Assembly: GCA_965202585.1 (NCBI GenBank)
Contig: OZ241827.1
Span: forward strand, 36,518,001 to 36,582,000
DNA: 64,000 bases
Direction of reading: 5' to 3'
Source of the DNA: Thalia democratica
Lineage: Eukaryota
Made by a program: the position numbers and the translations under genes
The notes under the pieces: generated by a model
Told to the model about the DNA's origin: nothing
The model's input: only the letters and a program-made list of their open reading frames with translations
The model's database searches: none
In this document: one piece after another, positions 1 to 20,702 of the stretch
Position numbering within the stretch: position 1 is the first letter of the stretch
How the letters are laid out: the number at the start of each line of letters is the position of its first letter

Positions 1-448
1 GTATTTTAGTGTAGTTTTTAAACTTACACTAGATATTACGGGAAATTTTTTGAATGTATACTGGATATTGCTATAATATTTGAAAGCAACACTAGCCATA
101 ACAATAAAACTAGAAACTTATGCTAGATGTTCTGGATTTAATGGTGAAGAAAAGAGAATAAATAAAATTTAGGCGTATCTAAGTGTATATATGAAATTCA
201 CACCAGACATTACGGGAAAGTTTTGAAAACTTAAGAGTTTCAAAGGATCTAGTCGGGTTCAAATTTAAAAATAAAATCATTATCTTTATCCGATTCCAGC
301 TGGATCCTTATATTAAAATGATATCTGGATCCGGCAGGGTACTAACCTAAAAATAAGATCCAGATCTGGTTTCTACTGGATACTAATTAAAAATAAGATT
401 TGGTTTCGGCCGGATATTTATTTTATAGATCTGTTAGATCACTAGTAA
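1..448. mobile_element. Partial non-autonomous DNA transposon with ATCCGG/CCGGAT subrepeats
   Basis: Clustered ctggat/atccgg motifs 280-420 ending in a ...gatcacta hAT-like terminus. Confidence 0.35.
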
Positions 449-490
449 TACATGACTCATATTAAAGTAAAGAAAAGGATAATTTTTCAG

Positions 491-582
491 GTGAAGTAAT
501 AGAACAAGGTACTCATGATGATTTAATGGAACTAGAAGGAGCTTATCACAAACTTGTTACTACTAATGCGTCACTTAGTTAA
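491..582 (+). CDS. Terminal exon of an ABCB/MDR (P-glycoprotein-like) ABC transporter; upstream exons lie before the window
   Basis: Acceptor ttttcag at 484-490; phase-1 translation (G)EVIEQGTHDDLMELEGAYHKLVTTNASLS* matches the ABCB C-terminal GxVxEQGTHxxL...GxY motif; TAA 580-582 followed by AATAAA. Confidence 0.8.
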
Positions 583-3500
583 TAAAAAAAAAACACTAAT
601 TCAAGTTTAATATTTTTTTGTTAAGAAAATTTAACTGTGTTGTGTCGTTGTAGTTAGATTTTATTTATCATGAGCAAAAATGTTTAATCGTTTTAAATAA
701 AAATAAACTTTATAGTTTAGAGTAGACCTATGTTGTATTAGTTTTCTTGCAAAAAAGATACGTAAAACTAATATTGTTTGCTATTAAATGTCTTTTTTAG
801 TTAAAAAAAAAGTTCACATACTAAATAATGTTTAAACAAGTTGATATAGTATTTAAAAGCAATTAATGTCTGGTATTACATTTTATATATACAAGACGTT
901 CCGTATATTAGGCAGTATTAAATGCTTATATACTTACTTATAAAAACAATTAGTAAAGACTAAACAGACCTTAATCAAAATTTTTAATTAAGTTAATCAA
1001 AGTTTAGTAGCTACTTCTATAAATTCTTTATAAGTTTTAGTTTTGTTTAAGACTTTTGTTAACTCTTTACATATTACCTAAACTTAAATTTTTGTTTCAT
1101 ATGTAAATGCTGAACTTGGATCTTAAGCTTAGTACTTTTTTAGAAGGTTACCAACATTTTCTTTTAGTTTTTTATTTATCTAAAGCTACTGCAATTGTTT
1201 ATTGCGAGACACTAAAAGAATAAAAGGTACTATTACGTAGATAATCCTAAAACACTTTGCTTATAGGTTTCTTTTTCAAAAAAAAATACCAATATAGGAT
1301 AGTTTTAGTTTTGCTTTTTGGTATTTTTAAATTTCATTAAACTTAAAAAAGAAGTGAAAAAATTTAAAATAAGTAGTTAATTCTAAGAAGCAAACAAACA
1401 GTTCGTGATATCAATGCTAAACGGAAAATAAATTCCTTTTAAAATTTTACTACTTAATAAATATTAACGTATATCATTTGAAAAAAGTTTTACTGATCTT
1501 ATAACAACTAAAGATAAGTAAACAAAATATCTAAAACTATTTGCATCTAATCTTTCTAAAACTGTCTAAAAGTTATTTAGTTTTGAAGTATAAACAAAAG
1601 TAGAATAGCCTTTTTTTATGTGTTTTGCAAAAGTTCATAGTTATGGGATTACTTTTCGATATTTTTTTTAACTTTAACGTTTACCATTTGAAGTTGCTTA
1701 TAAAACGCAAAAATAATTAACAATTTTTCGTTTTACACTTAACAAATTCACAAATGTTAACTTAAAAAAAAAAAATTGTGACAAAGGTAAGCAGCCATGT
1801 GCAACACATATGCAAAATGATAATTTTTTTAATAAATACTATAATAATATATATTTTGTTATAATTAAATCAAAATTTACGACCAACAAATAAAAAAAAA
1901 CATTAGTATATAATGTAAAGCACTTTAGATATACTACACAGTGTACTAGGGTGCATCCGGTGTCCCAAATCTTAAGTTTTTTTTAATACTTTTTTAGCGT
2001 GGATTATCATCTAACAAAAAAAAATTGTAAAAGTATATTTATATAATTTAAAAACAGTCAAGTTTAAGTTTTTAGTTTATTAACTAAAATTTTTGTTTCA
2101 AACTATGTACATTGTCAAAAATATTTTTCAAACTCGTACATTAATTTCAAAAAATTTTATTGTTTGTTATTATAGTGATAATAAAATCTAAAAGGTATTA
2201 ATTACTATATCTGTACGACGGTGTCATTTTTACTTAATTATTGTTATAAATTCTGTTATATATAATCAGTTTTAATGGAATAAAACAGTAAAAAAAGTAG
2301 TAGATGTCAGATTAGCTACTTAATATATGACACTTTTGCACGGGTTTCACTTTTTTCTCGAATTTTTATTTTAACAGTTGACACTAAAAACTTAATGAGT
2401 ATTATTTTAAAGAAGTGTAAGAATTTCTAATCGCCTTAGTATTTTGAATACAACTAATATTTGGTCAGATATTCTTACACAACAATGTTTAATGAAAATA
2501 AGATTTTTTAAATTTAGTTATGCAAAACTTAAACTTAAAAACTTTAGGAATTTTATTAAACAATTATTGGAACCAACTAAACTGTATAAACGTTTTGAGT
2601 GCATAAACTTTTTCGTTTTCTATTGTTTTATTCCTGCATTAGTTACTTTGAAGAAACATGATTATAAACAGATTATATTATTCATGTAATATTTTAAGTT
2701 ATTACTATTACTGTTTAGTTATTTTTAATCGTTAATAAAAGTAGTAATTATAATTATATCAAAAGTATTAATTTTTTTTCAATAAATTGCATTTTTTTTT
2801 TTTTTTTTAATCTTTTTGGTAATTGTTTTAACAAAAGTTTTTTTTTTAATAAAAATGTTTAATTATTTTAAAACTTGTGTAAAAAAATTCTTGATATCAA
2901 ACTATAATTAAGTTTATTTAAATAAAACAAGGGTAATAGAAACTTATATTTATTTGAAATTATTTTATATCAAAACTTTGTAGATTTCATGTTTGAAAAT
3001 CACTTGGAATTTTCATGAAAAATTTTGCACAAAATTAGAGTTACGTAATAAAATTATTTAGCTTATAATTATCTACTTTCAAATAAAATATTTTTCACCT
3101 GCATTTAAGAAATAAAAACTTTAAAAAAATTCAACAAAGTTCCACTTAGAAATAGATAAAACTTACTTATATAAAATAACGTCAAAAACAAACTTGCTTG
3201 AAATAAAATAGGTCATTTTCAAGAATAAGTCAAGAATATTTTTTCAATTAAATAAAACTATTCACATCTTGTGCTTGAAAATGTTATTTTTAACTTTACT
3301 ATTACTTTTAAAGTTTTTTGTTGGTAGATTTTTTGGTGTAAACCTGATTATACACAATAAGCTTAAGTAATTAGCATGTATACCAAGAAATTGATTACTC
3401 TTTATATAAAATGTTATACTAAGTATTATTTAAAAACATTATAGATATATTTTTACAGACTAATTAGTTTTGCTTAGAAATAAAATGTATTTTTCTAATT

Positions 3501-3692
3501 AGACAACAATATGGTTATTACATCAACATTTTTAAATCAAGTACTAAGTTAATCAAAAATATTGTTATTATTTATTTTCAGCCTCTATTATTTTGAAAAA
3601 TAAATTTTATTTCGAAAAATATTTCTCAATTATACTTTATAAACAATTAAAAAACTGTTTTTGTATCAACACTGAAAATTTACTTGCTATTA

Positions 3693-4050
3693 GTTTGTTA
3701 ACAAAGATTCTAACGAAACAAGTTCTTTGGAATATACAATAATAATAACAATTTGCACAACTTTTTTAAATTTAACTAGCGTAAGTTTCTCTGAGTTAAC
3801 CAACTAACGCAGTTTCACGGAGTTCTGTATAAAAATAAGTACTATAAAAAAATATCGAAGAATAAAAGACAAATACGTGTATTTACTAAAAAACAAATTT
3901 TTACAGTACTTTTTCTTTATTGAACCAATATATTTTAACTTGTTAATACTTATAAACATATGTTAAATCAATAAAGAAAAAGTACTGTGAAAATTTGATT
4001 TTATTATACATTCCATCAAACTGGCTTCGCTAGGATCTTTATTAACAAAC
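3693..4050. mobile_element. MITE-like element with imperfect ~45-bp terminal inverted repeats
   Basis: gtttgttaacaaagattctaacgaaacaagtt versus reverse complement of 4020-4050; internal perfect 21-bp IR 3903-3923/3968-3988; related ends near 19820 and 32290. Confidence 0.45.
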
Positions 4051-4196
4051 GATTAACTTAAATGTTTAAATGTTTGTATGTGTATTTACTAAATATAATC
4101 CATAATTGTTACATTCAACAAAAAACATCGGCTAAAGTCTGCAGAACAGAAGTCCGGACTTTCGTTTGCCGTGAGACAAGCTCAAATTTAACAAAT

Positions 4197-4335
4197 AGTT
4201 GATCATGCCAATTCGATCATCAGACCACAAGTTTCGGTAAGCTGAGACCGGTTTCGTCCTTAACTAGCGTAAGGACGAAACCGGTCTCAGTCTACCGAAA
4301 CTTGTGGTCTGATGATCGAATTGGCATGATCAACT
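4197..4335. repeat. Near-perfect palindrome: 66-bp arms, 7-nt loop, contains hammerhead-core fragments
   Basis: 4197-4262 is the reverse complement of 4270-4335 with 2 mismatches. Confidence 0.9.
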
Positions 4336-5215
4336 TAATTGTTACAGATTAATAATAAATGATAGCTACAATATATCTTAGTTATAAATCTATAACAATG
4401 TTTCGGCTTATATTTTGAAAACACCCATATTCATCATTAGCTTTAAGCGCTCGAAACGCTTTGCTGATAAGCGAGAATAGATAACAGTAGTACCCAACAC
4501 TAGGCCAGGACTACAGGCCAAAACTTAATCAACAACCACGAGTGTGCCAGAAGCTTTAAGAATGAGGATTTTTGATTATAATGCAAGCTATTTTTTTCAG
4601 TTAAGCATTGATATATACAATTGATAAAACCTTGTTTATGTAAGCCAAAAAAATGTCTACCAGGCTAGACATTTTGAATGTTTATGTAAGTTGCTGTATA
4701 GAACAACTGTCTTCTTGTATAAATTGAAAACAATTGTTTAGTTTTATTGAAATTTTACTTATATCGTAATTACAAAAAAGTTTTAAAATTAAAAAAATGT
4801 TATTTGAATAGTAAACAGTAGAGTCATTTTACGTATTATCAAGTATTATTTACGTTTATCAAGTTTTAATTAACTTCACAGTTGAAAATTTATTTAAAAT
4901 TAACTTTTTCCCAATTATTACTTGATTTTGATAGCTTAGTATTTAAAAGTTTGTGTTAAGAATACTTTTAACTTTTTTAAATTTTTTAAATATTACTGAA
5001 AAGTTTAAGTCCAAAGTTTTTTAATTAGTTTTACTTATTAAAAAGTGTATTGTTTTGACGCTATTGCTTGTTCCACAATTTAACGTTTCATTGAAATTTA
5101 TTAAATTTAATAGTAATTACCATAGCAACTTAACTTGTGTTAACTAAAGTTTTTATTGGAAATAAAAGTTTAGTTTACTAAATAACATAAACAGTAGATA
5201 GTTTCAAAATATGAA

Positions 5216-5338
5216 ATGAGTTTCAAAAAGTTATTACATGCAATAAAACCTTGGAACATCTTAGTTTGTGCACCTCTTTTAAAACAAAACGATTTCACTT
5301 TACATAATGTTAGTGAAAGCTCTGGTATTGGAATAAAG
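5216..5338 (+). CDS. LACTB-like exon 1 (MSFKKLLHAIKPW...GIGIK)
   Basis: ATG 5216, open 41 codons, donor AG|gtaagt; no conserved motif, so the start is less certain. Confidence 0.55.
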
Positions 5339-8300
5339 GTAAGTTTGTTAAATTTCAGTTTTTTTTTATTGTACTAGTTAAATCGAGGGTCGGCAAAATG
5401 CGGTCCTGATTTAAATAGCCATAAGACTAATGATTTTCATCTTAGTTTTTTTTTTATACATAAAGTATTGTCACTTTTTTGTAGTTTCATCATGTCATTG
5501 TTTAGTATTCTTAAAAGTTTTAAACATTTTGTAACTAGAGACAATTCGATTTTTAGAAGCAGTGCAAAGAAGCAACTAGACTTATTCTTCGGTTTTACGA
5601 AAGAGAGTACAAAGAGTCTCAACACAAACCAGCATGTTCTGTTGCCGTAACTTTTAAAGGTGAAACAGTGTATAAAAGAGGTATAAAACTTAAAATTATT
5701 AATGTAAAGTATTTTATAATTTTTAAAGAACATAAAAAATTAAATGTATTTCAAAGCTTTCGGGTTCATGGACTTAGAAAACCAAATTCCGGCATACACG
5801 GATATGGTAGGAGATATATCTGATGTAACAAAACTAATAACATCCCACGTTGCTTTGGCTTTGCATTGCGATCCAGAACTTACTAACCCTGGATCAATAA
5901 CTGGTCCAAAAGAGTTTAAATTTGAAATTTTTGACACAATACGCGATTATATGCCTCGTTATGGACCAGATCGCGTGACTGAAAATTGGGAAAAGGTTGT
6001 CTAAATTTTTTTTTAACCTATATACGTTTTTTTTAACGTTTTCATAAACAACTCAGTATGTAAGCTTTGGCTATAGAATTATAAAATAGATTTAGATAAA
6101 TTACACTATTATCGTTTTAGTGCCCTAGTAAAGGGTTTGTATAAATTGTTTTTACTAAAATAAATAAATCTCTAACTAAGAACTTCCCAAAAATCATCAA
6201 AAAGTTGAAAAATTTTATACGATAATTGATAGATATTAGAGCAGGAGTCTTCAAACTTCGGCCCGCAAAGCAAAAGTCTGCGCCCGCGAATACATTTTTT
6301 TAATTCGAAAAAAATAAAAACAAAATTAGATAACTAACTAGACAACTTCGTATTACTAATGCTCTACGATTGCTTATTTTATCACGTTTTTTTTCTTAAT
6401 AATATTATTTTTTTGATTAGTACAACTTTTTTTAAATAATTGCGGCCAATGGAAGACTTTTTTCTATACAGTGCTGCCCACTAACAACTTTTTCTTAAAA
6501 AAATCGCCCGCATTTTTAAAAGGCTGCCGACTCCTGCACTAGCTCATGAACTTAAACAACTTTAAGTGTAATAATCAACTAAATTATGTTATAGCTTTTG
6601 TTTTATTAGTGTTATTAAAAACAAGAAGACGTATACTACAAATGAAGTTTATAAATTGTGTGTTGGTGTACTAACGTTTTTAAAACAACAAAAAAACACT
6701 GTTGATAGTTTGATAGTAAAAAATGATAACATGTTAGAAAACTTTTCATTTGTTCTTTTTATTCGAGTAAACTGGCATTAAAAGTTTGTAATTTATGATA
6801 ACCGAAAGGTTTTTTTGTGCACCAGGTCCTAGGACCAACTATTTGAAGCACTTTTTTTTGTCTTTCAATAATATAGCTTTTCAAACAGCATTTTAAAGGG
6901 AAAGCTTCGTTCTATTGTGAAAAACTTTAAGTCTTTTTTTTAATTAATAAGATTTCGAAGGTACTTTAAATTACGAGTGATAACCCAACAAGGCAGTAAT
7001 TCCAAGAGATAGTTGGAGTAAAAATACCTAATACATTTTTACATAATTGTTATATGTTTTTTAATGTTTTTCTTCACAGTAAGATTACTTTTCATAGGAT
7101 TGTTCAAATTTTATAATCTTTAAGTAGCGGAACGTTGTCTGTCTAGTATACTATTTGACTATTAATTAAAAATAGTTGTTTTAAAATCTTAGTAAAAGTA
7201 TAATTGATTGATAGAAAACTTTTTTTTTCTAACAGTTTGTAAAAGGAAAAGATTGGCCTCTGTGGTATATAATGGCACATATGAGTGGAGTAAGACATTA
7301 TTCTAGCTTTAACAACGAAAATAATTTCGCCATTCAACAAGAGTATGCTGAAATATCTGAGTCATTTGAAATGTTTGTTGAAGATAGATTAGTAGCATAC
7401 CCAGGTTAGCTCAAACTTTCAGAAACATAATTTATTATAATTAGACTGTTGTACATTTTATTTAAATTTATAAATATGAAAACTTAAGAAAGGTAATATT
7501 GTTTTGCTCCACCCCAGGCTTTCTTTAGTTTGAGATAAAAATTTTAAAGTTATTTTTTAATATAGCAAAAAAATATTTAATTTCAAATTCAACTAAACCA
7601 TCATATCATGTCCTGTAATTACTTTATTGATTACAAAAAAAAAGTTTAATTACTTTAAGTTTTTGAAACTTTAAATTTTAAGTGTTATTCTAAAAAATAT
7701 TAAAGTACTTTCCGTACAATTTGTTAAGTTTTTATAACTACACAGTGGACCAGAAATTTTTTTAAATATTATGAGTCTTCTTTTGAACAAAGAACCTTAT
7801 AAAATTGAAACTTTAACCAAATAAAAGAAATTTATCTGCAGCTAAAGTTATGCGATTTTACGGGAAATTATTAATATATTTTTTACTCAAAAAAGTTTGA
7901 AGTAAACTTCAATAAAAAAATATTAACATATATTTACTTTAGTTTTTTTTTGCAAATTAAAAACCAAAAACTAATTATTTCACTTTTTTCTCTTAAACTA
8001 GTTTTAAGAGAGAGGAAAATTTTTTTAAATAGACACTAACACGTTAAAAAAAGCATACCAAAATGTTCTAAATTTAACTTGTTACAAATTCAACTTGGTA
8101 AATGATTAAAAAAGCTCATTACAAAGAACAGAAACAGAAACGAGACATATATTACTTTAATCCCCTTTCAACCTAAACGCCTCAACAACACTAGGCAAAT
8201 AATTCTAAAACCTAGTAAATACATTTTCTGACAGCAATCATCCATGTAGAAAATATTTAACAGCAATACTATTAAACATCATTCAACTGCTGAAGTAATT

Positions 8301-11300
8301 TCAGAAACAGAATAATAGCACATCATAATGAAATATTAAACAAAAAAATAATTGAATAATTCAACTACATAAAATCTATGTGCTACAAAAAAAACAATAT
8401 ATACAATCAAGCCTCATTTCTATATAGAGATATAGTCGAAACGAAACACTCAATAGTCTTATGAATCTACAGAAAATACACTTTAAAAAATACTAACTAG
8501 AATCATAAATGAAGATGTACAAAAAAATATATATACAAATCAGAAATGTCTAACTATATGTAGAATTTAAAAGTAAAAAATACAATGTGGAAACAGAGCA
8601 AAATCAAAATCCAATGCTAAAAATGGTTGTATTTGCACAGTAGAAAAAATAGAAATAGACACAATTGAAAAGTAAATAACTAAAGTAAAAATACCAAACA
8701 ATAAATTATATGCATCCACTACAAAAAGATTATTTCAAATCTAACACAAAACAAAGCCGTAGATACGATCAGTTTTTATATAATTTATCGAGTTTGTTAT
8801 TAGTACTTTATAAATGATTTTTATCAAAGGACTATAAGATTTTCACCTAGTTTTACCAACCTTTACTGAATAACTAGTCAGTAAATTAAATGCTTTAAAA
8901 GACTTTATCAAAATTAAAAAAAAGTATGAAAAAGTGCAGTAAATTATCTAATTCGACTAATACGTTATTATGTCATGTTGCTTAATTTTTTATAATTATA
9001 AATTTTGCTCAAATAAAAAAACGTTATTAAAAATTTGGTGTAAAGTAGTGATTTTTTTATCTATTATATAAGTAAAAACTATACACTATTCATCAAAAAA
9101 CCTATGATTAAATAAATTCAAGTAACATAAACAGCTGAATTTTTCAAATTGCAGATTTTTAGATACATATGACAAAACTTCAAATTTTATATTTGAAATA
9201 AGTTTAAAGATACCCTTAACTTATTTTCAACAAAAGACATGTATTTTTTAATCATAAACATTTTAAATTTAAAAACTACTAAACATCTATAAGCTGGAAT
9301 AAACAGAAATATAAGTAAAATGTTGTTAATGTTACATATTTTATAGTTAAAAAGAACTTGTTTTCTAGAAAAACAGCATGTAGCTTATAATATATTTCAG
9401 AAAGCAAATATTATAAGTTTGAAAACTTTTTTGAGTGAGAACTTTCTTACTTGAAGATTTATTTTGATGGTATCTTAGACCAACGGAAAATTTTTATTCT
9501 ATGAATTTCATTTTTTACAATGACTATAACTCATTACTTTTTAGAAAAACTTAGGTAAACTTTGTAATATTTTAGAATCTTTTTTAAGTTTCTTGCTTGA
9601 AGTGTTTCTAACGTCAAACTTAAAAGTTCAAATTTGAGTTTTTTATTTAACTAACTATGTTTTGTTAAATCTATGTCAAGAAAGGACTTTAATACAGCAA
9701 TATATTATTATTTTTTATTTATTTTGTTTACTGCTACCAGCTAATTAAAGTTAAACAAAAAAACAGTTTATGGTAATTTTTTTTATTGCTATTAAAACAA
9801 TTGTTTTAGAATAACAAACTAATAACACGGCTTTTTTTTTGTTGTTATGTTATTTTCTAAACGTACATGATTTTTTAGAACATTTGAAATATTAAATACT
9901 TGACTTTAATAGTTTCAAAATAAATTTGATAAATTTAAAAAGCAGCTTTCATAATATTTGCTCTCTACTTTTTTATAATGAATAAATTTAAGTATAGCTT
10001 TTATAAAATCATAAAACTATTTTTTGATGTTGTTGAAACATTCAGCACGTCTATTTAAAATTAAACTTTTAGCGTATAACGAAATGAATAATCCTTTTTT
10101 TCAACCAAATGTATGTATTAACATTTTTTAAAACTTGTAGCATCAAATAGCTCGTATAATTAACCATTTTTAGTATAAATGTATAGTTACACTAAAACCG
10201 TATTAGTTTTATTTTATTTATTATTATTTATTAGAGTTTATCAGGTTGAAGGTTGATTAAGAGTTTTTAAATATTAATAGTTTGATTGAAAAAATTTTTA
10301 ATACATTTGTCATTATATACTCAAAAAAAAAAATAGTGGGTAATAGTAACCGAATTTTAAATATATTTTTAATAAAACATAACTTACTGAAAGTAATTAT
10401 TTAAATTCGGCTACAAGTAAAACTTTTTATTTAATAAGTTAACACATTAAAGGGGTGGGTGTCAGAAAATCACAGCGTCACTTTAGCACAGAGTGACTCT
10501 TTGGCACTGGGTGACACTTTAGCACAGAGTATCACTATAGCACGGCGTCACTTTAGCACGGTGTCTTTTTAGCACAGAGTGACACTTTAGCACGATCGAT
10601 ACTTTTAAGTAATTAAATTATATACTATTAATAAAAAATAAAGTTAAAAAAGTATTTAAAATTTAATTTTATATAGTCAGAATCCTGTTGATTACGCATT
10701 TCAGACACTTTAAAGTGTGAATTCAAGGAAAAGAATATCTACCAAAGTTTATTTATTCAAAGTTATAGTTATGTATTAATATATATTAAGTTATCGAAGC
10801 TTTTAAAAAACAAAGGCAATTTATTTATCAGTATTTATTAATATTTTTATTATATATCCTTATTTAAAATTTGTGCTTCAAATCTAACCTTACTGAAATT
10901 AATTTAAGCTTATTAAAAATAAACCTGGACCTCGTATACATTGCTAGGTTTATACAAATAGTTTTGTGTTGAAAATATAAAAGTAAAAGGTTTAAAATCC
11001 CTTTTTTTAAATTTTTAGGTAAAATGAGTTAAAAGAAATTGTAAACTCACTTTTATTTTGTTGTTAAAAAGTTAAGGTTTGCTTTAAAATAATTAGTAGT
11101 ATTATATATTATTTACGAATCTCTAGTTAACGCTTTATTTTATAAAATATTAAAATCTTGTAAACTTTTAGTCTATATGTTGCATAGTTTGTTTTTAGGT
11201 TTTTAAACATAACAGTCAAAATGTCATGTAAGCATAAAAAAGAGTATCACTCCGTGCTAAAGTGTCTAACCGTGCTAAAATGTCACTCTGTGCTTAAGTG

Positions 11301-14300
11301 TCATTCCGTGCTAAAGTGTCAATCTGTGCTGAAGTGACGCCTGTGCTTTTCTGATCCGTTCCCTATTAAAAAGTGTAGAAATCTTGGTATTTTTAGTAAT
11401 CATTTAATTATTTTTAGCGTTTAAAATGATTTTATTTTAATAAAAAGTACTCTTGAAATTCTTATTAAAGTAAGTTAGACGTTATATTTTTAAATTTCTT
11501 ATTAAACTTGTGTAAAGTTTACTTTAACTAAATACTACTTTTTTGTTTTATCAAAATGTTAATTGCAGTTGTTTAACTTAAAAACTTATGTATTATTGTA
11601 CAAATTTAGAATAGTTTATACTGTAAAATACAAAACTTGTATCTTAGCTGTCTTAATTTAAAGTAAACAACTGACACAATATTACAAATTAACCGAGTTA
11701 TATTTCTTACAAAACTTTAGTTTTAAAACTTTTTTATGAATAGAATAAGAAGTATAAAAACATTTTAGGCCGAAAGCAAATTTATTCTGGATATGCATTC
11801 AACATACTTGGTTATATTGTAGAAAGACATACGGAAGTAAATTTTAGTGACACAGTGTGTAAAGAAATGTGCCGTCTTAATCTTAACAACACAATGGGCC
11901 ACTACTTTGATAATGTTCCCTTCAAAACTATGAAGTTTATATTTTCAGTAAAACTTATTTTATTTTTTAAAACTTAAAAGAATAGTATAAATAGCTTTGT
12001 TATAAGAATTAGTAGTTTTAATAAATCTTGAAATTTTGTAGTTGGTTCTACTTGAAAAACTTAATTTAAAGACTTCATCACTTTTTAGTTTACAGTTTTG
12101 AATATATGAAGCGTAACTAATAAATGCTATATTTAGCGATTGAACTATAGTGTAACAAAAACTAAACTATTGTACCTTTATAATTTTTTTTTATATAAAA
12201 AATAACAGACTTTAAATAAATTTAAATGCAGTTTTCAAACTTAGTCATCAGTCTCAACTAAATTTATAAATAATAAACGTTTTAACTTTAAAAACTATAA
12301 AAGTTGTAAAATCTTATATCTTAAAATGATAGATAGTTTAAGCTATAAATAGATTTTATTTGTCTCTCTGTTCTTGAAAGTATTGAAAAGAAAGTATTGA
12401 AATTAGGAAAAAAAATCCGTACTGAAGAAACTGTATTACTGTTTCATAAATTCAATAACAAATTGATTCTTAACAATAAAATAATTTTAGCAACTACTAC
12501 ATGCTAGATGATACCACAACCTGTAATAAAAAAAAAACTGTAAACGGAAATTTTTTTGACTACACTTACAATATGCCCTCTAGGGGAGTGATGTCTACAG
12601 TTGGAGATCTTGCTAAATTTGCAGATATGTACATGAGAGCAAAACAGGTTTTTAAATAAAAATAACGAATCATATCAGTTTAAAGCTTTTTAAATTATTT
12701 CAAACAGTTAATAGTAATAAATAGATAAAACTTAAATATAATTTTATTATTGAATGTTTTGGTTTAAAGAATTCAAATAAAGATTCTTTCTATTTGAATA
12801 AGATTTATTTTAGCACTGACAAGGTCTTTGACCGAAACTTATTTTGTAAAATAAATTTTTGAAAGAGTAAACTCATAATTTTATTATAGGGAGTAGCAGA
12901 TTCTGTTGGCCCAATACCTACGAAGTGGGTGAGTAAAAATTTGTTTTTTATGATTGAAAACGTTTTTACTGTAAAAAAAAAAGAAATACATGCCTAAATT
13001 TAAGTCCTTAAACTTTAATACTGTTCCAATAGATGCTTTTAAAAGTATTGAACTATAATATATGCGTAATATTAAGATTTTTTTTAAAGCATAATTAATA
13101 ATCTTTAACTTTGTCTAACATGTAAGGTATATAAATTTGCTTTGATACCAATGTTGTATTATGATGTTTAAAAAAGTATTTTTTACTAGAAAAATTATAA
13201 CTAGCTAAAAATTATTTATTCAGACAAACAACTTTGTTCTTGAGTTTAACCGTTGAGACTTAGAAATATGTAATATTTTTAAATTGTAAGTATATCGAAA
13301 AATTAATTAAGTGTTAGCATATAGTATCGTGTAAGTAGAAACAAATGTTTTTATAACAAAATCAACTTTCATAAATCAGCATCTTGTAAAATTTCTTTTT
13401 TTTTGGTCATTAAGACATTTTTAACTAAAAGCTTTTTTAAATTTTTATTATTCTCTCTATTATAACTTCGGATCATCATGTATATTCAATCTTGTGAAAT
13501 ATGTACTAAGATATTTAAAACATATATATAGTTGTTTTTATACTGTTTTATTTTTTATGAAATACTAGGTTAGACGAATGATGAGTAGAAGGGCAGGAAA
13601 AATGAGTGACTCAAGTGAAGCTATAGGACTAGGATGGTTTATTAAGTCACGAAAAACATTTGTAAGTACCTTTTTACTTGACTGTCATTTAAGTAACAGT
13701 TTAATATTGAATTTTCTAGCATTATCTTTTATTGCTAAAATAGGTTTGATTTTCTAAAACTTAGTAACTCGTAGAACTTTATTTAAATTACTTTAACTCG
13801 TATCCTTTTTTTTTTTGGGTACAAATTTAGTTAGAAAATATTTGAACAACTTTTTTCCGGTGCATAACTTATTTAAAAAATATAACAAAATACATTTAAT
13901 TTTCTTTTTAAATCTATTTGAATACTTTGGAAGTAAGTCTTGCCAAAGTTGTATCTTACTAAATTAAACTAAACTGAAATTGAGATGAAATTATATTGTA
14001 GTTTAAAGTTTCAAAATATAAAATGACGTAATAATCAAGTGTAAAAGTTAACTAAATGCCTATACAGATTTATATTTGAGGTTCTAAATTAAACAAAATT
14101 GTTCTCAACTTATTTGAAAATAAGGAGACAAATATACAACATTAATTAATCAAAATTTTATTTGTAAAACTCAGTTTCACCCTTTTTGGGATCTTCAGTT
14201 ACAATTTAAATCAGAAAAATAAAAGTGAAACAAAACATGGAAGATACTAAAAAGCAAAACAAAACAAGTAAATTAGAATTAGTAACTTATGGTATTTAGA

Positions 14301-17300
14301 AAGTTTCGAGTCTTAAACATGAAAATTGTATGTACTAGAATTACTTAATAAATTGAAAACTTTAACTTAGGTATTCAACATAAAACTAGTAAATTTTAAA
14401 ATAGAATCAGCTTTTAGTGAATAAATAAACTAAATGACTTACATATTATCATGAACAAAGGGATTTGAATTAAATTTTTAACTTGATTAACTACTAGCTA
14501 GCTGGAGTTAAATTGAACTAATTTAAAATTGTACTGAAAGTTTTTGAATAAAATCGCTTCTATTATTATGACGTAACTAATGTATACTTTGAAGTAAGTT
14601 AATGTTATAATTTAGTTTTTACAGTTTAAAGCTGGAGTTTTTTTTTAATTATTTAAGTAGGACTAAAAACGTTTTGTACCAATAAATTAAAACAAATTTA
14701 AGTAAATAAAATGACATGCAAAACTAATTATCAAGCGCTTAAGTCTTAAAGTGAAGATTTTTTAAGTGTGGACAATTAGCAAACAGTTCGTGTCTTTGTT
14801 TTAAACTCCTTATTTTACTGGCTCTGGCTATTTCTAGTTTTTCTAGGCTGCATATGCTGTGGATTTTTCTTATCTCCCCGATGTGGTGGATGATACTCCA
14901 TTTGATGTTATATTTAATATTGTTGTTTTTTAAAAACCAGATGTATTTAGCTAGTTCGGTGGTGTTTTCTTCGTAGGTGTTAAAACTGTGGTTATGATTG
15001 TACCATCTGCTATTAAAAGTATTAGCAGTGCTCCCAATGTATTCTTTTGTTTCCTTGTTTGATATTACGGTGGCTTTATAAGCAACATTTTTTATAAAAT
15101 CCCTTAAAGGGTTAAACTGAGTTTTACAAATAAAATTTTGATTAATTAATGTTGTATATTTGCTCCTTATTTTCAAATAAGTTGAGAACTATTTTGGTTT
15201 AATTTAGAACCTCAAATATAAATCTATACTGCTCTTCAACCATTGAATCGAGCACTTTCATAAAGAGAAGAACACCAAACAAACCATGGAAAATATTAAG
15301 AAAGTAGACTTCAACTATAGTTTGAAAGATATACCAATTGCAAATAAAAAAGAATACCTCATTAAACTTTATGATGCTACTTCGAGATTCGTCAACCGAT
15401 TAAGGTGGAAATTATTTTTTTACAACAGCGAAGACATTAGCCCACACGAGTTTAAAGAAGAAGATGTTTTCAAAAGCAGCAGATCAGCACCATCGTGTGA
15501 TGATCTTAAAGCGTTTGAAAATGATCTATTCGATATCATTATAAATATCAAATTCACCTCGTATAAGTCAAATTTTCAGAATAAACTAAAACAAGACCTA
15601 AAGAAACTACTAATCAAAAGCAAAGTAATACTTTTCGCCGACAAAACAATAAGTTTATATTAGACAAGCCAAAAACTTTATAACAAACTAATAACCGACA
15701 ACTTAACTAAAACATACAAAATTTCTAATACAGACTTAATCAACTAAATAAACCTAGAATCTGAACAAATTATATGTGAGAGAAAATACAAAAACAAAAA
15801 AATACCTAAATTTTCAGCTGCAGATGCATTCATTACTATAAAGGATCACAGGAAAAACTTTTCTTTTAACATCGAATGTAGAATCCTCAACCCCGGAAAA
15901 AACGAACTCGGTAGAATTAGTAAAACCATTTTAGAAAAAAACAGTAAATGAAATAAGATACAAATGTTCTCTAATACAATGAAAGAATTCTCACGATGTT
16001 ATATCATGGTTTAATAATATAAAAAATAAAAATACTTTGTTAATTTTGACATAGTTAGATTTTACCCAAGTATAAAAGAAGAGCACTTGATGAAAGCCAT
16101 AAGCTTTACAAGAGCATACACTAATATAGAAGATAAAGATATAATTTTAATCAAACACACATGTAAAACAATTCTAACATTTAACAACAAAACATGGATA
16201 AAAAAAGACGGCAACACATTAATTGATGTACCAATGGGATCATTTTTTGGCGCAGAGATCTGTGACCTTAAAGGCCTTTACGCCCTAAACCACCTTAAAT
16301 CCCTCTATAAAAATTATGAAATCGGTTTATAGAGAGACGACGGCCTTGCTATCATCGAGCGAAAAAGTAAACAAACTTTAGAAAATACCAAAAAGAAAAC
16401 AATCGAGCTATTTAAGGAAGTCAGATTCAAAATAACTATTGATATAGGCGCAACCGCATGCAACTTTCTAGATACAACTCTTAACCTCACTGACGACGAA
16501 AAACCATGCCGTTAAATATATCAACAAAAAATCAAACCACCCAATAATTATTAAAAAAACCTCCCAGAAATGATCGAAAAAAGAATTAAGAAACTCTCAA
16601 AAAAAAAAAAAATATTTAAAAACTCTGTACACAGTGTGTAGAGATTCGACATATCCAAACAAACAGAGGCGATTCGAACAGAAGCAACTCGAGCAAGGAC
16701 AACTCAAGTAAGGGCAAATCGAGCACCGGCAACTCGATTTTTTTTCTGCACCACCTTGGAAAAATACCACGCGACGCCACTAGTACACATATACCAAAAT
16801 GCTCTAAATGATTCAAATTTTAAACACATATTAAAATACTCAGAAAATAAAATCCCTCAAACTAAAAAGAAAAGAAACCGACCAAGAAAAATCATATACT
16901 TCAACCCACCCTTCTGCCAATCCGTTAAAACAAATTTAGGGAAAGTATTCTTTCAACTCATCGATAAACATTTTTAAAAGAATGAAGTACTCAACAAAAT
17001 TATAAACAGAAATAATTGCAAAAGTTCATACAGCTGTATGAATAATATCAAAGTTATAATACAAAAACATAATAAAAAAACCATAAATAATATTTCCAAT
17101 AAAGAAAAAAAACGAAATCAATATCACCCCTACTTGTAACTGCCGATCTAAAAACTCGGAATTTACAAAGATGTTTCTCCCACCCAAGAAAAAGGTAACA
17201 TCACCTATAAATTTAGTTGTCACTGTGGTAGTGACTACATGGGAAAAACATCTCAAAGGTTTCACGTAAGAATCGATCAGATCAGAAAAGATCACTTTCA

Positions 17301-18488
17301 GAAAATCCTGAAAAGCTTGTTTGATGGTCGTTCGGAGAAACCTACGAAAAAATACTTCTCGGCGATTGGGCAACATTTTTTTGACAATCATAAATGTGCT
17401 TTTCAGTTTTAGTGAGAGCGGAGAACTCTTTTCAGCTACATATTCTAGAAGCCTTATACATTCAATCTTTAAAACCCAGTTTATGTAAGCAGAAAGGGTC
17501 GTATACCAAACTAGACTTTTTAAATCCTTATATTAAGTAATTTTAGAGTAATTGGTTTCGCGTAAATTTATTTATTTTTTAAAGTGTAGTTTTATTTTCA
17601 TTTGTTATCGCTGATTTATTTTAGTTTGATTTTAATCTAACAAGTTTTATTAATACAGCAAAGTTCTTTAGTTTAAGCATTTAGTTAACTATTATAATTG
17701 ATTATTACGTCTTTTTATAACTTGAAACTTTAAACTACAACATAATTTCATCTCAATTTCAATTCAGTTTAATTTAGCAAGGTACAATTTTTGACAAGAC
17801 TTACATCGAAAGTACTCAAATAAATTTAAAAAAAACATAAATATAATTAAACTTTTTTTCTATTGATCAAAAAAAGTTTTTTTTTATATATAAATTTACA
17901 TTGTATCTGTGTAAAAATTATATCTTAAAAAATAATTGTTTTGAAAAGTTTAAGCTTAAATAACTTCTTAAACTTAAACTAACTCATTTTTTAGTACTAT
18001 AATTTTCTATTATTTTTTTACTATTTTTTAAGGTTATATTACTTAAACACTAAACAATTTTGTAGTAAAAATAAGCTAATTTTTGACAATAATTTTACCA
18101 GAAACATACAAAAGATGGGCTTCCATTTTATTACAACACGTACTACCATAAAGGTATTGGTAACTCTTCTTCTTGTTATCTTTCTACTAGTGAACTAAGC
18201 ACAACAAACTTTGCTGCTTCGCAAAAAGAAAACGAAGAGATCGCAAAACAAGCAGTAGCCTGTAAATTATCCTCTGAAAAAGGAACCGATGAAAGTAAAA
18301 TTAAGCAGAAATTAACACTTTCAAACACTGCTTTTACTAAAGGTGTAACAAATAAAAATAGTTTGACTAGTGCCGAAAAGAAAAAACTAAACTCTGTGAC
18401 AGTAGCTATTCTTTTAAATGATGGAGAAAAAGACTTGCAGAACTTAGGAGAAGAAGTAGCTGATGTATTCAACAATGATCTTAATTGA
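5216..18488 (+). CDS. LACTB-like serine beta-lactamase/PBP-fold protein, 9 exons, 498 aa, catalytic Ser replaced by Asp
   Basis: Exons 5216-5338, 5557-5680, 5757-5995, 7236-7404, 11769-11934, 12491-12647, 12890-12928, 13569-13661, 18102-18488 are all GT-AG, phase-consistent and sum to 1497 nt. LACTB-like motifs: AFGFMDLEN, AHMSGVRHY, DRLVAYPG, YSGYAF, GVMSTVGDLAKF, GLGW, HKG, VTVAILLN. Confidence 0.85.
5557..5680 (+). CDS. LACTB-like exon 2 (KQCKEATR...PACSVAVTFKGETVYKR)
   Basis: tttttag acceptor, G|gtataa donor; resembles LACTB PGIVVGVSVDGKEVW. Confidence 0.75.
5757..5995 (+). CDS. LACTB-like exon 3 (AFGFMDLEN...ISDVTKLIT...NWEK)
   Basis: Lies within ORF 5744-6004; tttcaaag acceptor, AAG|gttgtc donor. 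Confidence 0.85.
6242..6536. mobile_element. hAT/Charlie-like MITE in LACTB-like intron 3
   Basis: CAGGAGTC...GACTCCTG termini and cggcccgc subterminal motifs. Confidence 0.55.
7236..7404 (+). CDS. LACTB-like exon 4 (FVKG...MAHMSGVRHY...DRLVAYP)
   Basis: ttctaacag acceptor, G|gttagc donor; SHxSGxRHY-type motif. Confidence 0.85.
10453..11363. mobile_element. MITE with inverted subterminal arrays of ~17-bp repeats (cactttagcacrg) in LACTB-like intron 4
   Basis: Array 10471-10593 and inverted array 11242-11348; right end ccgttccc shared with elements ending at 37020 and 44285. Confidence 0.7.
11769..11934 (+). CDS. LACTB-like exon 5 (GRKQIYSGYAFNILGYIVE...)
   Basis: cattttag acceptor, AA|gtttat donor; YS-x motif of the second catalytic element. 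Confidence 0.85.
12491..12647 (+). CDS. LACTB-like exon 6 (...YNMPSRGVMSTVGDLAKFAD...)
   Basis: attttag acceptor, CAG|gttttt donor; STVGDL motif. Confidence 0.85.
12890..12928 (+). CDS. LACTB-like exon 7 (GVADSVGPIPTKW)
   Basis: ttattatag acceptor, TGG|gtgagt donor, 39 nt, phase 0-0. Confidence 0.7.
13569..13661 (+). CDS. LACTB-like exon 8 (VRRMMSRR...AIGLGWFIKSRKTF)
   Basis: aatactag acceptor, TTT|gtaagt donor; GLGW motif. Confidence 0.8.
14162..14204 (-). ncRNA. Minimal type I hammerhead ribozyme in the PLE pseudo-LTR
   Basis: Minus strand reads ttgtaa-CTGAAGA-tccc aaaaa gggt-GAAA-ctga-GTT-ttacaa; 6-bp stem I. Confidence 0.65.
16633..16782. mobile_element. 150-bp hAT-like insertion in the PLE ORF with 15-bp tandem repeats
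   Basis: Interrupts KNSVH|IYQNAL; GTACAC duplicated at 16627-16632 and 16783-16788; end ataccacgcgacgccacta matches 22818-22836. Confidence 0.65.
17157..17845 (+). mobile_element. Penelope/Poseidon-type (lineage B) GIY-YIG 3' fragment plus 3' repeat
   Basis: GIYKDVSPTQEKGNITYKFSCHCGSDYMGKTSQR...SAIGQH...EALYIQSLKPSLCKQK; 17677-17845 recurs inverted at about 13890-14059. Confidence 0.75.
18102..18488 (+). CDS. LACTB-like terminal exon (KHTK...YYHKGIGNSSSCYL...VTVAILLND...FNNDLN*)
   Basis: ttttaccag acceptor, 129 codons to TGA, AATAAA at about 18504; HxG third motif. Confidence 0.85.
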   Translation, partial: KHTKDGLPFYYNTYYHKGIGNSSSCYLSTSELSTTNFAASQKENEEIAKQAVACKLSSEKGTDESKIKQKLTLSNTAFTKGVTNKNSLTSAEKKKLNSVTVAILLNDGEKDLQNLGEEVADVFNNDLN

Positions 18489-18666
18489 ACATAATTTAAC
18501 AAAAATAAAACTATGACTGCTGACTTCTAAAACTAATTCAGTATATAGTGGCTTATAAAGCATTATACAAAAAAAATGTTTGATAAAAGTGCGGAAATTC
18601 TTACATCATAATGGTTTTTTTTGTTTATATTTCTTTTTATATTAATTATAAGTAGTTTTTGACAGT

Positions 18667-19573
18667 AAGCTGAAGTTTCGCAGATATTCTAAATCAGATA
18701 TTTGCATTTTTGAACAGATATTCGCTATAAACAAGTTTTCGTAAAAAATTAATGGAGCTTACAGTTCTTATTCAATTTAGACAAAAAAAATCTTAAACGA
18801 TTTGTCTTGCTTTTTAGATATTACATTTTTGGTTTAGATTGAAAAAATTTATAAAAATAATACTTTTTTTGACCTCAAAGTTCAACTAACTTTTTGCTTG
18901 TTTGTTCTATATAAAACAACTAAGTTTCGTAAAAAATTAATGGAGCTTACATTTATTATCAAACTTAGACAAAAAACATCTTAAACGATTCGTCTTGCTT
19001 TGTAGATATTACATTTTTCAATCTAAACCAAAAATGTAATATCTAAAAAGCTAGACAAATTGTTTAAGATGTTTTTTGTCTAAAATGAATAAGAACTGTA
19101 AGCTCCATTAAGTTTTTACGAAACTTAGTTGTTTTATATAAAATAAACAAGCAAAAAATTAGTTGAAGTTTGAGGTCAAAAACAATATTTTTTTTTATGA
19201 ATTTTTTTAATCTAAACCAAAAATAAAATAAATACAAAGCAAGACGAATCGTTTAAGATGTTTTTTGTCTAAGTTTGATAAGAATTGTAAGCTCCATAAA
19301 TTTTTTTACGAAACTTAGTTGTTTTATATAGAATAAACAAGCAAAAAGTTAGTTGAACTTTGAGGTCAAAAAAAATTTTTTTTTTAATGATTTTATTCAA
19401 TCTAAACCAAAAATGTAATATCTACAAAGCAAGACGAATCGTTTAAGATGTTTTTTTGTCTAAATTGAATAAGAACTGTAAGCTCCATTATTTTTTTACG
19501 AAAACTTGTTTATAGCGAATATCTGTTCAAAAATGCGAATATCTGATTTTGTTTATCTGCGAAACTTCAGCCT
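18667..19573. mobile_element. Fold-back element built from ~190-bp tandem subunits in inverted arms
   Basis: Termini gctgaagtttcgcagata / tatctgcgaaacttcagc; gtaagctccat recurs at about 19099, 19288, 19479 and inverted at about 18753, 18941. Confidence 0.85.
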
Positions 19574-20702
19574 CCAGTTTTCGACACATAGTTAAATACT
19601 TCTTTTTAAAAAAGAAAACAAAAGTGCATTAAAATTCCTTTTAAAGTATCTCGTAAAATATAAACATAAATAAACACAAAACGCTAGTTTCTGTAGCTTC
19701 TTATAATTAACTTATCAAAAAAAATTTTTTGTGTTTTATAAAAAAAAATTCGCTAGTGTTTGTAATTAAAAACAGCTAGAATAAATGTTAATTAATCAAA
19801 ATATAAATTTAAGTGTTTGCTAACAAAAGATCCTAGTGAAACAGGTTCACTGAAATATATAATAAAAACAAATTGTACAGTATCTTCTTTTATTGTACCG
19901 ACATATGTATCTGTGTGTTAACGAATTAATACTCTTCAACCGGGTTCTGTAAAAATTAAATACTGTGTAACGTATCGACCTGTATTAAAAAACAGGTTTA
20001 TATTTAACTTTAAAGTGTGGCAAACTAGATTAATAATTATTGTGTTTTAACAACTTGAAAATATTTAGTAAATGCTAATTATCAAGTTTTTATAATAAAA
20101 AAAGAACTTTATCTATAAAAGTTAGTCAATGAAGCTTTAAAAATAAATCCTATTGGCCCTATAGTATAGGGTTTTTCCAAATAACACGACAGCCTGAACT
20201 ATCTAAAAATAAATAAAGTTGTCGATTGTTTTTTGATATTTTATAACTATTTTCAATCTTTATAAATCTATGAAATTCAATTGTACATGTTTATCCCCTA
20301 ATTGTCCGCAAACAACATTAATCTTTAAAGGATTGCTATGGTAAACAGAAATAAAAATGTATAAATACTCTTTTTTAGTAAACTTACGGAACTTTTAATT
20401 GTTAGTTTTTTAACTATGTTAAAAATACAAAAAGTTTTAATGCAAATGTTTTTTTTCTAATAAGCTTTCTATTGTTAAAAACATCAAAATTCTATTTATG
20501 CTTAAACCGTTAAAATCGCCTTAAATCGCCTTGCAACATTATTTTATTTTAGGAAATATTTTTAAGATGAATCATTTATTAAAATTTAAACCTGGTTACA
20601 AAAGTTTAGTATTTCATCATAATACTAACTCTTATTATATACGTTTTTAGGAAAACTCGTAGATATTTCAATTTACATAATTTTTTTTTTTGCTTAACTT
20701 TA

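Follow-up and report, generated by a model that had tools for sequence, protein, structure and literature searches.

The 64,000-nucleotide window analyzed here, positions 36,518,001 to 36,582,000 on the forward strand of contig OZ241827.1 of Thalia democratica (assembly GCA_965202585.1), is AT-rich eukaryotic DNA without any N. Its positive strand carries, at 5216–18488 of the window (~13.3 kb), a LACTB-like gene in which the codon at the catalytic serine position reads aspartate. LACTB, a conserved mitochondrial protease that forms filaments, is also a tumor suppressor; its physiological substrates and its roles apart from catalysis are still debated. The gene comprises nine exons with a total of 1497 nt and 498 codons, ends in one terminal TGA, and has introns bounded by GT..AG in every case. 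Its model combines stop-free frames and GT..AG sites with homology, and this independent rebuild arrived at the same 498-codon open reading frame (ORF) over nine exons that an earlier sequence-only reading of the window had described. The features of the gene are:

5216–5338, + strand: exon 1, codons 1–41, with its ATG at 5216, an in-frame stop upstream at 5195–5197, and a GT donor at 5339.
5557–5680, + strand: exon 2, codons 42–82 plus 1 base; both flanking joints are present in RNA.
5757–5995, + strand: exon 3, with motif 1 (GDISDVTK); present in RNA contigs X1, X2, and X3 with 0 differences and aligned ungapped over IASISK of the paralogues and LACTB.
5822–5824, + strand: codon 105, GAT (Asp), at the catalytic serine position; GAT also in RNA, in DNA of organism B, and in ENA contig L011.
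5831–5833, + strand: codon 108, AAA (Lys), the kept lysine of SxxK; K in 121/121 homologues.
7236–7404, + strand: exon 4, with AHMSGVRHY corresponding to the family block HxxGxRHY; its upstream joint is present in X1, X2, and X3.
11769–11934, + strand: exon 5, with motif 2; an RNA loose end, CCGAAAGCAAATTTATTCTGG, is identical to the window from 11770 onward.
11783–11791, + strand: Y224-S225-G226 (motif 2), where relatives have Y-S-[T/S/N] and the paralogues YSN.
12491–12647, + strand: exon 6, with the conserved family block PSRGVMSTVGDLAKF; predicted from AG/GT, frame, and homology.
12890–12928, + strand: exon 7, a 39-nt micro-exon of 13 codons, GVADSVGPIPTKW, with donor GTGAGT; predicted from sequence and homology.
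13569–13661, + strand: exon 8, with the GLGW block; predicted from AG/GTAAGT, frame, and homology.
18102–18488, + strand: exon 9, with motif 3, an insertion of ~70 aa, the last beta-strand block VTVAILLND, and TGA at 18486–18488.
18147–18155, + strand: H386-K387-G388 (motif 3), over paralogue HDG/HSG and over HTG in LACTB-like proteins; a probable assignment.
18504–18509, + strand: poly(A) signal AATAAA, 16 nt 3' of the stop.

Exon 1 encodes a basic N-terminus, MSFKKLLHAIKPWNILVCAPLL, whose character (mitochondrial versus secretory) is ambiguous, and the ~70-residue insertion that follows motif 3 in exon 9 is rich in Lys, Ser, and Thr. The micro-exon is the sole candidate, among stop-free in-phase 39-nt AG..GT segments in introns 4 to 7, that restores the 'GP' invariant in the paralogues. 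Its addition raises the paralogue-profile score from 76.9 to 87.3 bits (+10.4), and the alignment then extends to motif 3. An eight-exon, 485-codon model was rejected on these two grounds.

Transcripts of the gene are present in three marine metatranscriptome runs (X1, X2, and X3), in which the exons are found and the introns are absent. A 1510-nt contig from run X1 matches 5257–5338, 5557–5680, 5757–5995, and 7236–7404 with zero mismatches; its joints fall on the modeled GT..AG sites, skipping 218, 76, and 1240 nt, and after 7404 it continues into the first bases of exon 5. The same three joints are seen in run X2, and the 1240-nt joint in X3. The gene is transcribed and correctly spliced over exons 1–4. 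RNA thus covers the joints of exons 1 to 2, 2 to 3, and 3 to 4 and the run-on from exon 4 into exon 5, while the splice junctions from exon 5 to exon 9 are predicted from GT..AG, frame, and homology. At 1510 nt, the contig from X1 agrees in length with a nine-exon mRNA whose 3' end lies near 18542, ~30 nt past AATAAA.

The aspartate codon itself is found in every source. The rebuilt frame, the RNA, and further DNA all place GAT, codon 105, at 5822–5824 in the context G-D-I-S-D-V-T-K, as the sequence-only reading had it, and no source has Ser at this codon. The RNA contigs read GAT, with X1 and X2 covering the codon with 0 differences. A DNA run from a second organism, organism B, covers 5150–6816 with 13 substitutions, of which 12 are non-coding and one is synonymous (5673 T>C); none lies at codon 105. 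An ENA metagenome contig (L011, with ORF P0001), 95.7% identical to the window, carries exons 1–4 in an intact frame and likewise reads GDISDVTK. Assembly error and RNA editing at codon 105 were both rejected, as DNA and RNA agree in four sources.

The family to which the gene belongs is recognized from the protein as a whole. Scored as a complete spliced product against profiles built from PF00144-annotated proteins, it reaches 117 bits with a profile of 121 LACTB-like proteins and 87.3 bits with a profile of the intact in-genome paralogues, and pairwise phmmer comparisons with source-named LACTB proteins give 58–67 bits. Scored exon by exon against Pfam PF00144, exon 5 reaches 18.7 bits (E 0.0011) and exon 6 reaches 11.3 bits (E 0.18), with a cut-off of 27 bits; exon 3 alone has no PF00144 match in Pfam, and exons 3 and 9 alone have 0 matches among solved structures even at E 10. 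The LACTB-like gene is recognizable only as a whole, its single exons being too diverged. A profile of the paralogue clade finds human LACTB chains 7V21, 7ULW, and 7V1Y as its best matches among solved structures (E ~5e-13). In the family tree, a long branch (1.42 substitutions per site, the second longest in the tree) carries this gene and no other, between the LACTB-like clade and the intronless-paralogue clade, and the protein is ~24% identical to LACTB-like proteins. Structure matches, phmmer scores, and tree position all indicate common descent with LACTB and the penicillin-binding proteins (PBPs) of low-molecular-weight class B. By these measures, the protein is a divergent member of the LACTB/class B low-molecular-weight PBP lineage (probable beta-lactamase fold, PF00144), and its homology is clear; the profile scores and the human LACTB structures bear out the LACTB-like assignment first made from the sequence.

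The gene is evidently not the LACTB orthologue of its genome, as a LACTB-type gene is carried by another locus, at 43.6 Mb of contig C8. This canonical gene (L006 and L012–L014, C8:43.62–43.65 Mb, - strand) is multi-exon and extends over >15 kb. Its LACTB-type exon, GYGERDIENHVHCSTETSMLISSISKPIT, ends in LISSISKPIT, and its motif-1 exon reads GYGERDIENHVHCSTETSMLISSISKPITVAVLMKL, with SISK kept. Two further paralogues are intronless: L002 on contig C6, with 535 aa and 92 bits to PF00144, and L003 on contig C8, with 508 aa and 79 bits. The matches of L002 in the ESM Atlas are generic bacterial PF00144 clusters only. The coding part of L003 (334–1860 of that locus, C8:37.60 Mb, - strand; SISK/YSN/HSG) has 53% G+C against flanks of 27–28%, a composition that is also reflected in long spurious ORFs on the opposite strand, and L002 has 41% G+C in flanks of 25%. 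Such values are unusual for an AT-rich genome and could reflect a retrogene, gene transfer, or biased conversion.

Degenerate PF00144-like exons are found at three more loci, L008 (C10:18577089–18577247), L010 (C10:15282541–15282684), and L009 (C2:32642822–32642947). Their motifs include RIGTISMPIT, with Thr for Ser and Met for Lys, and FGYLSMLFT, with Tyr for Ser and Met for Lys, and one motif-2 exon among them appears without its Tyr. The three loci (C10:18.58 Mb, C10:15.28 Mb, and C2:32.64 Mb), each with one to three weak exons by tblastn, were left out of the tree and may be pseudogenes or very diverged genes.

Searches for relatives of the gene in other species found its close counterpart alone. 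Among 1.84 billion representative proteins, exon 3 matches only P0001, a 111-aa ORF of the same exon from the 95.7%-identical contig; four other matches were discarded as spurious repeat proteins. The tree places no orthologue with the gene. A peptide-pattern scan and a scan for the exon 2–exon 3 junction in JGI metagenome contigs found no orthologue, in a collection with few spliced eukaryotic proteins. Distant orthologues were not found in these searches.

Alignment with relatives defines which catalytic residues have changed. From GFG-x-D-x-EN to T-S-H, the paralogues L002 and L003 align to the gene gap-free, with GNIASISK over GDISDVTK, and human LACTB (7V21/7ULW), aligned through the paralogue profile, places RIASISKSLT on the columns of motif 1 with D105 at the nucleophile Ser. 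At the nucleophile column, S is found in 121/121 LACTB-like proteins and 6/6 paralogue-clade sequences, and D105 occurs only in this gene. In these alignments, Asp at the nucleophile position is unique among the 132 relatives compared. The residue before it, S104 here, is A in 119 and G in 2 of the 121 relatives, and the lysine column is K in 121/121, as is K108. In motif 2, the first and second columns are Y and S in all 121, matched by Y224 and S225, while the third, which is T in 88, S in 32, and N in one, is occupied by G226. For motif 3, HKG lies over HDG/HSG/HTG in two of three alignments (the paralogue profile and MAFFT) but not by the 121-sequence profile. The catalytic Ser codon is AGC or AGT in the paralogues and in the canonical LACTB-type exon, so GAT is two substitutions away, via Gly or Asn; the claim that it lies at least two substitutions from a Ser codon therefore stands.

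The sequence-only reading had held all three catalytic motifs to be altered, and this is true in part. The serine of motif 1 has become Asp and the third residue of motif 2 has changed from N/T/S to G, but Lys108, Tyr224/Ser225, and His386/Gly388 are kept. The HKG probably assigned to motif 3 stands in the sequence as read, but its middle residue also varies in paralogues that have the SxxK serine (HDG, HSG). As aligned, just two changes are real departures: S to D at the nucleophile, and N/T/S to G at position three of motif 2. Blocks distant from the active site are well kept, among them AHMSGVRHY, STVGDLAKF, GLGW, and VTVAILLN.

Selection was measured by Nei-Gojobori counting on a single close pair, the gene and L011, over exons 1–4 (the first 218 codons, including motif 1). 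Differences number 9/655 in exons and 89/2173 in non-coding sequence (p = 0.0004). Nonsynonymous divergence (dN) is 0.0096 and synonymous divergence (dS) 0.031, giving a dN/dS of 0.31, with an intron difference of 0.046; nonsynonymous sites thus change at ~one fifth of the pace of introns (p = 5e-5). Neither stops nor frameshifts occur in exons 1–4 of L011, and no disabling change is seen in organism B. The shortfall of dN against the intron rate shows purifying selection on the protein, for at least the first 218 codons. The question raised when the gene was first noticed, whether D105 is conserved with a dN/dS below 1, is answered in favor by the value of 0.31 and by the Asp kept in L011, for codons 1–218 of one close pair.

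Together, these observations suggest that the protein is most likely, with moderate confidence, a selectively maintained non-catalytic paralogue, or pseudoenzyme, that acts in binding or scaffolding. An essential catalytic residue is replaced in this homologue of an enzyme family, and the protein is both expressed, as its spliced RNA contig demonstrates, and kept by selection. The SxxK serine is the acylated residue throughout the superfamily (PMC2266909), and in human LACTB the S164A substitution abolishes peptidase activity (PMC12148432). With its nucleophile serine changed to Asp105, the protein would have lost the acyl-enzyme chemistry of the family. Asp105 would lie beside the kept Lys108, with which it is probably ion-paired, and this pairing may close the catalytic center. 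Gly takes the place of the polar third residue in motif 2, and the remaining fold is kept under purifying selection. The fold and its cleft may now be used without catalysis, for binding of a ligand, peptide, or partner, for LACTB-like self-assembly, or for modulation of an active paralogue. That activity has been lost, and that the protein serves in binding or as a scaffold, is what we infer here. Of the three possibilities that the sequence-only reading had left side by side (a conserved pseudoenzyme, an Asp-nucleophile variant, or a shifted serine site), the first is favored by transcription, splicing, purifying selection, and the unique replacement of the nucleophile.

Several observations weigh against a maintained pseudoenzyme. 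Lys108, Tyr224, and His386 are kept, though a fully relaxed active site might lose them. The selection test spans the first 218 codons, one close pair, and 9 exon substitutions. The collections searched, which are poor in spliced eukaryotic proteins, yielded no orthologue from any more distantly related species. Finally, the long terminal branch (1.42) fits neofunctionalization and an earlier relaxation equally.

A continued hydrolase function is unlikely, and it could take two forms. Asp105 could act as a carboxylate nucleophile or general base together with Lys108 and Tyr224, or Ser104 could serve in a shifted S-x-x-x-K arrangement. Retention of Lys108, Tyr224, Ser225, His386, and Gly388 is consistent with an unconventional nucleophile, as is the purifying selection on the protein. 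The shifted site draws on Ser104, a new hydroxyl one residue upstream where relatives have Ala (119/121) or Gly (2/121), and a helix can present residues i and i+4 on one face. The motif is, however, flanked by ungapped alignment, and Ser104 is therefore expected at the small packing position before the helix rather than at the nucleophile position; A, G, and S are conservative replacements there. As to an Asp nucleophile, we know of no such member of the beta-lactamase/PBP fold, and an Asp beside Lys would more likely engage it in a salt bridge and so take away the general base. In motif 2, the polar residue at the third position is missing as well (G226). The Asp-nucleophile and shifted-serine forms are both unlikely.

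It is also doubtful that the gene is a copy in decay, still transcribed but turning into a pseudogene, with an apparent constraint that is short-term or local. The second longest branch in the family tree would fit decay, as would the finding that exon 3 retrieves only its own allele among the 1.84 billion representatives. The same genome holds LACTB-like pieces with degenerate motifs (TISM, YLSM), and a Penelope-like element sits in intron 8. Against these stand the intact 498-codon frame over nine exons and 13.3 kb with splice sites all canonical, the correctly spliced mRNA, a nonsynonymous divergence of ~one fifth of the intron rate, and exons 1–4 without disabling changes in two other lineages. 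Moreover, GAT is two steps from AGY, so the serine loss is not recent, yet the frame survives.

A third possibility is that the protein is a regulatory partner of the canonical LACTB on C8, co-assembling into or capping its filaments, with Asp105 mimicking a phosphorylated, or off, serine. Aspartate is a classical phosphomimetic, and the genome does hold a canonical LACTB-type gene with SISK (LISSISKPIT). LACTB functions in filament form and must assemble to be active (PMC12148432), and its catalytic serine has been reported as phosphorylated (PMC2266909). This partnership is nevertheless very unlikely, being purely inferential and set against an identity to LACTB-like proteins of only ~24% and a large insertion after motif 3 that differs from LACTB. 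A functional Asp105 in general, whether through new carboxylate nucleophile or general base chemistry or as a phosphoserine mimic that would make the protein a constitutive 'off-state' regulator of LACTB filaments, is similarly improbable.

The introns and the DNA upstream of the gene contain further features. Within intron 3, an extremely abundant repeat of ~45 nt occupies 6797–6844. Its contigs reach a summed depth of ~8e5 in the organism B DNA run, all three RNA runs contain it as well, and it occurs next to many different flanks (loose ends ...AGTGGTGTGCGACTC); it probably represents the core of a short interspersed element of very high copy number. Intron 8 (13662–18101) contains the Penelope-like retroelement, at 14063–17500. 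It comprises a GIY-YIG-like ORF on the - strand at 14739–15176 (KEYIGSTANTFNSRWYNHNHSF) and several + strand ORFs at 15286–17409, the last of which ends in a GIY-YIG-like stretch; none of its ORFs has a Pfam match at E 0.01. No Rfam family reaches its gathering score over window positions 1–20000. Upstream of the gene, a stop-free frame at 466–579 on the + strand, ...GEVIEQGTHDDLMELEGAYHKLVTTN, has, by eye, the look of the C-terminal part of an ABC-transporter ATP-binding domain; it probably represents the final exon of an upstream gene.

Compared with LACTB, the protein shares the fold family and a gap-free N-terminal block (GYADVENRVP...RIASISKSLT in LACTB, GFMDLENQIP...GDISDVTKLIT in this gene). 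The blocks HxxGxRHY, YS-x-xG, STVGDL, GxxW, H-x-G, and VxxxxN are common to both, and an insertion separates the last two strands in each. The catalytic residues of LACTB are S164, K167, and Y323, of which S164 is needed for activity (PMC12148432). This gene differs from LACTB in its serine (to Asp), in YST (to YSG), and in HTG (to HKG), as well as in its ~70-residue Lys/Ser/Thr-rich insertion and its identity of ~24%.

A survey of animal PBP-like proteins defined the LACTB family by SXXK, [SY]X[NT], and [KH][ST]G, admitted only proteins with all three motifs, and found the catalytic serine conserved in all metazoan homologues (PMC2266909). Read against the motifs of Peitsaro et al. 2008, the protein has D105-V-T-K108 for S-X-X-K, Y224-S225-G226 for [SY]-X-[NT], and, by a probable alignment, H386-K387-G388 for [KH]-[ST]-G, a motif from which L002 (HDG), with its SISK, departs as well. 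By the survey's definition (PMC2266909), the protein would fall outside the family at all three motifs, yet to judge from profiles, structures, and tree it clearly shares its descent.

The closest comparison within the genome is with L002 and L003 and their metagenomic relatives P0006–P0009. The gene shares with them an 87.3-bit profile match, the residues K/W-x-W-P before HxxGxxHY, and the 'GP(I/L)' block. These relatives differ in that they keep SISK, YSN, and HDG/HSG and are without introns or an N-terminal extension, and the tree groups them with good support in a clade of their own, with this gene outside it. The strongest profile match (117 bits) is with bacterial proteins of the 'CubicO group peptidase, beta-lactamase class C family', relatives of the low-molecular-weight class B PBPs. 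Motif spacing in these LACTB-like hydrolases is equal to that of the gene up to the GxGW block. Unlike the gene, however, they have S-x-x-K and Y-S-[T/S/N] in 121/121 cases, are 350–400 aa long, and are without the long C-terminal insertion or the N-terminal extension.

Large enzyme families commonly contain catalytically dead members, and the same genome has further degenerate copies, so the finding adds to an established pattern and does not open a new one. In the paper collection searched, none combined 'LACTB' with 'pseudoenzyme'. Like pseudoenzymes generally, the protein is a homologue of an enzyme family in which a key catalytic residue is replaced and which is nevertheless expressed and constrained. 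An expressed, constrained, serine-less member of the LACTB family suggests that this fold is also used without acyl-enzyme chemistry, and it may offer a natural 'separation-of-function' protein for probing roles of the fold beyond proteolysis, in binding, assembly, and regulation of an active paralogue.

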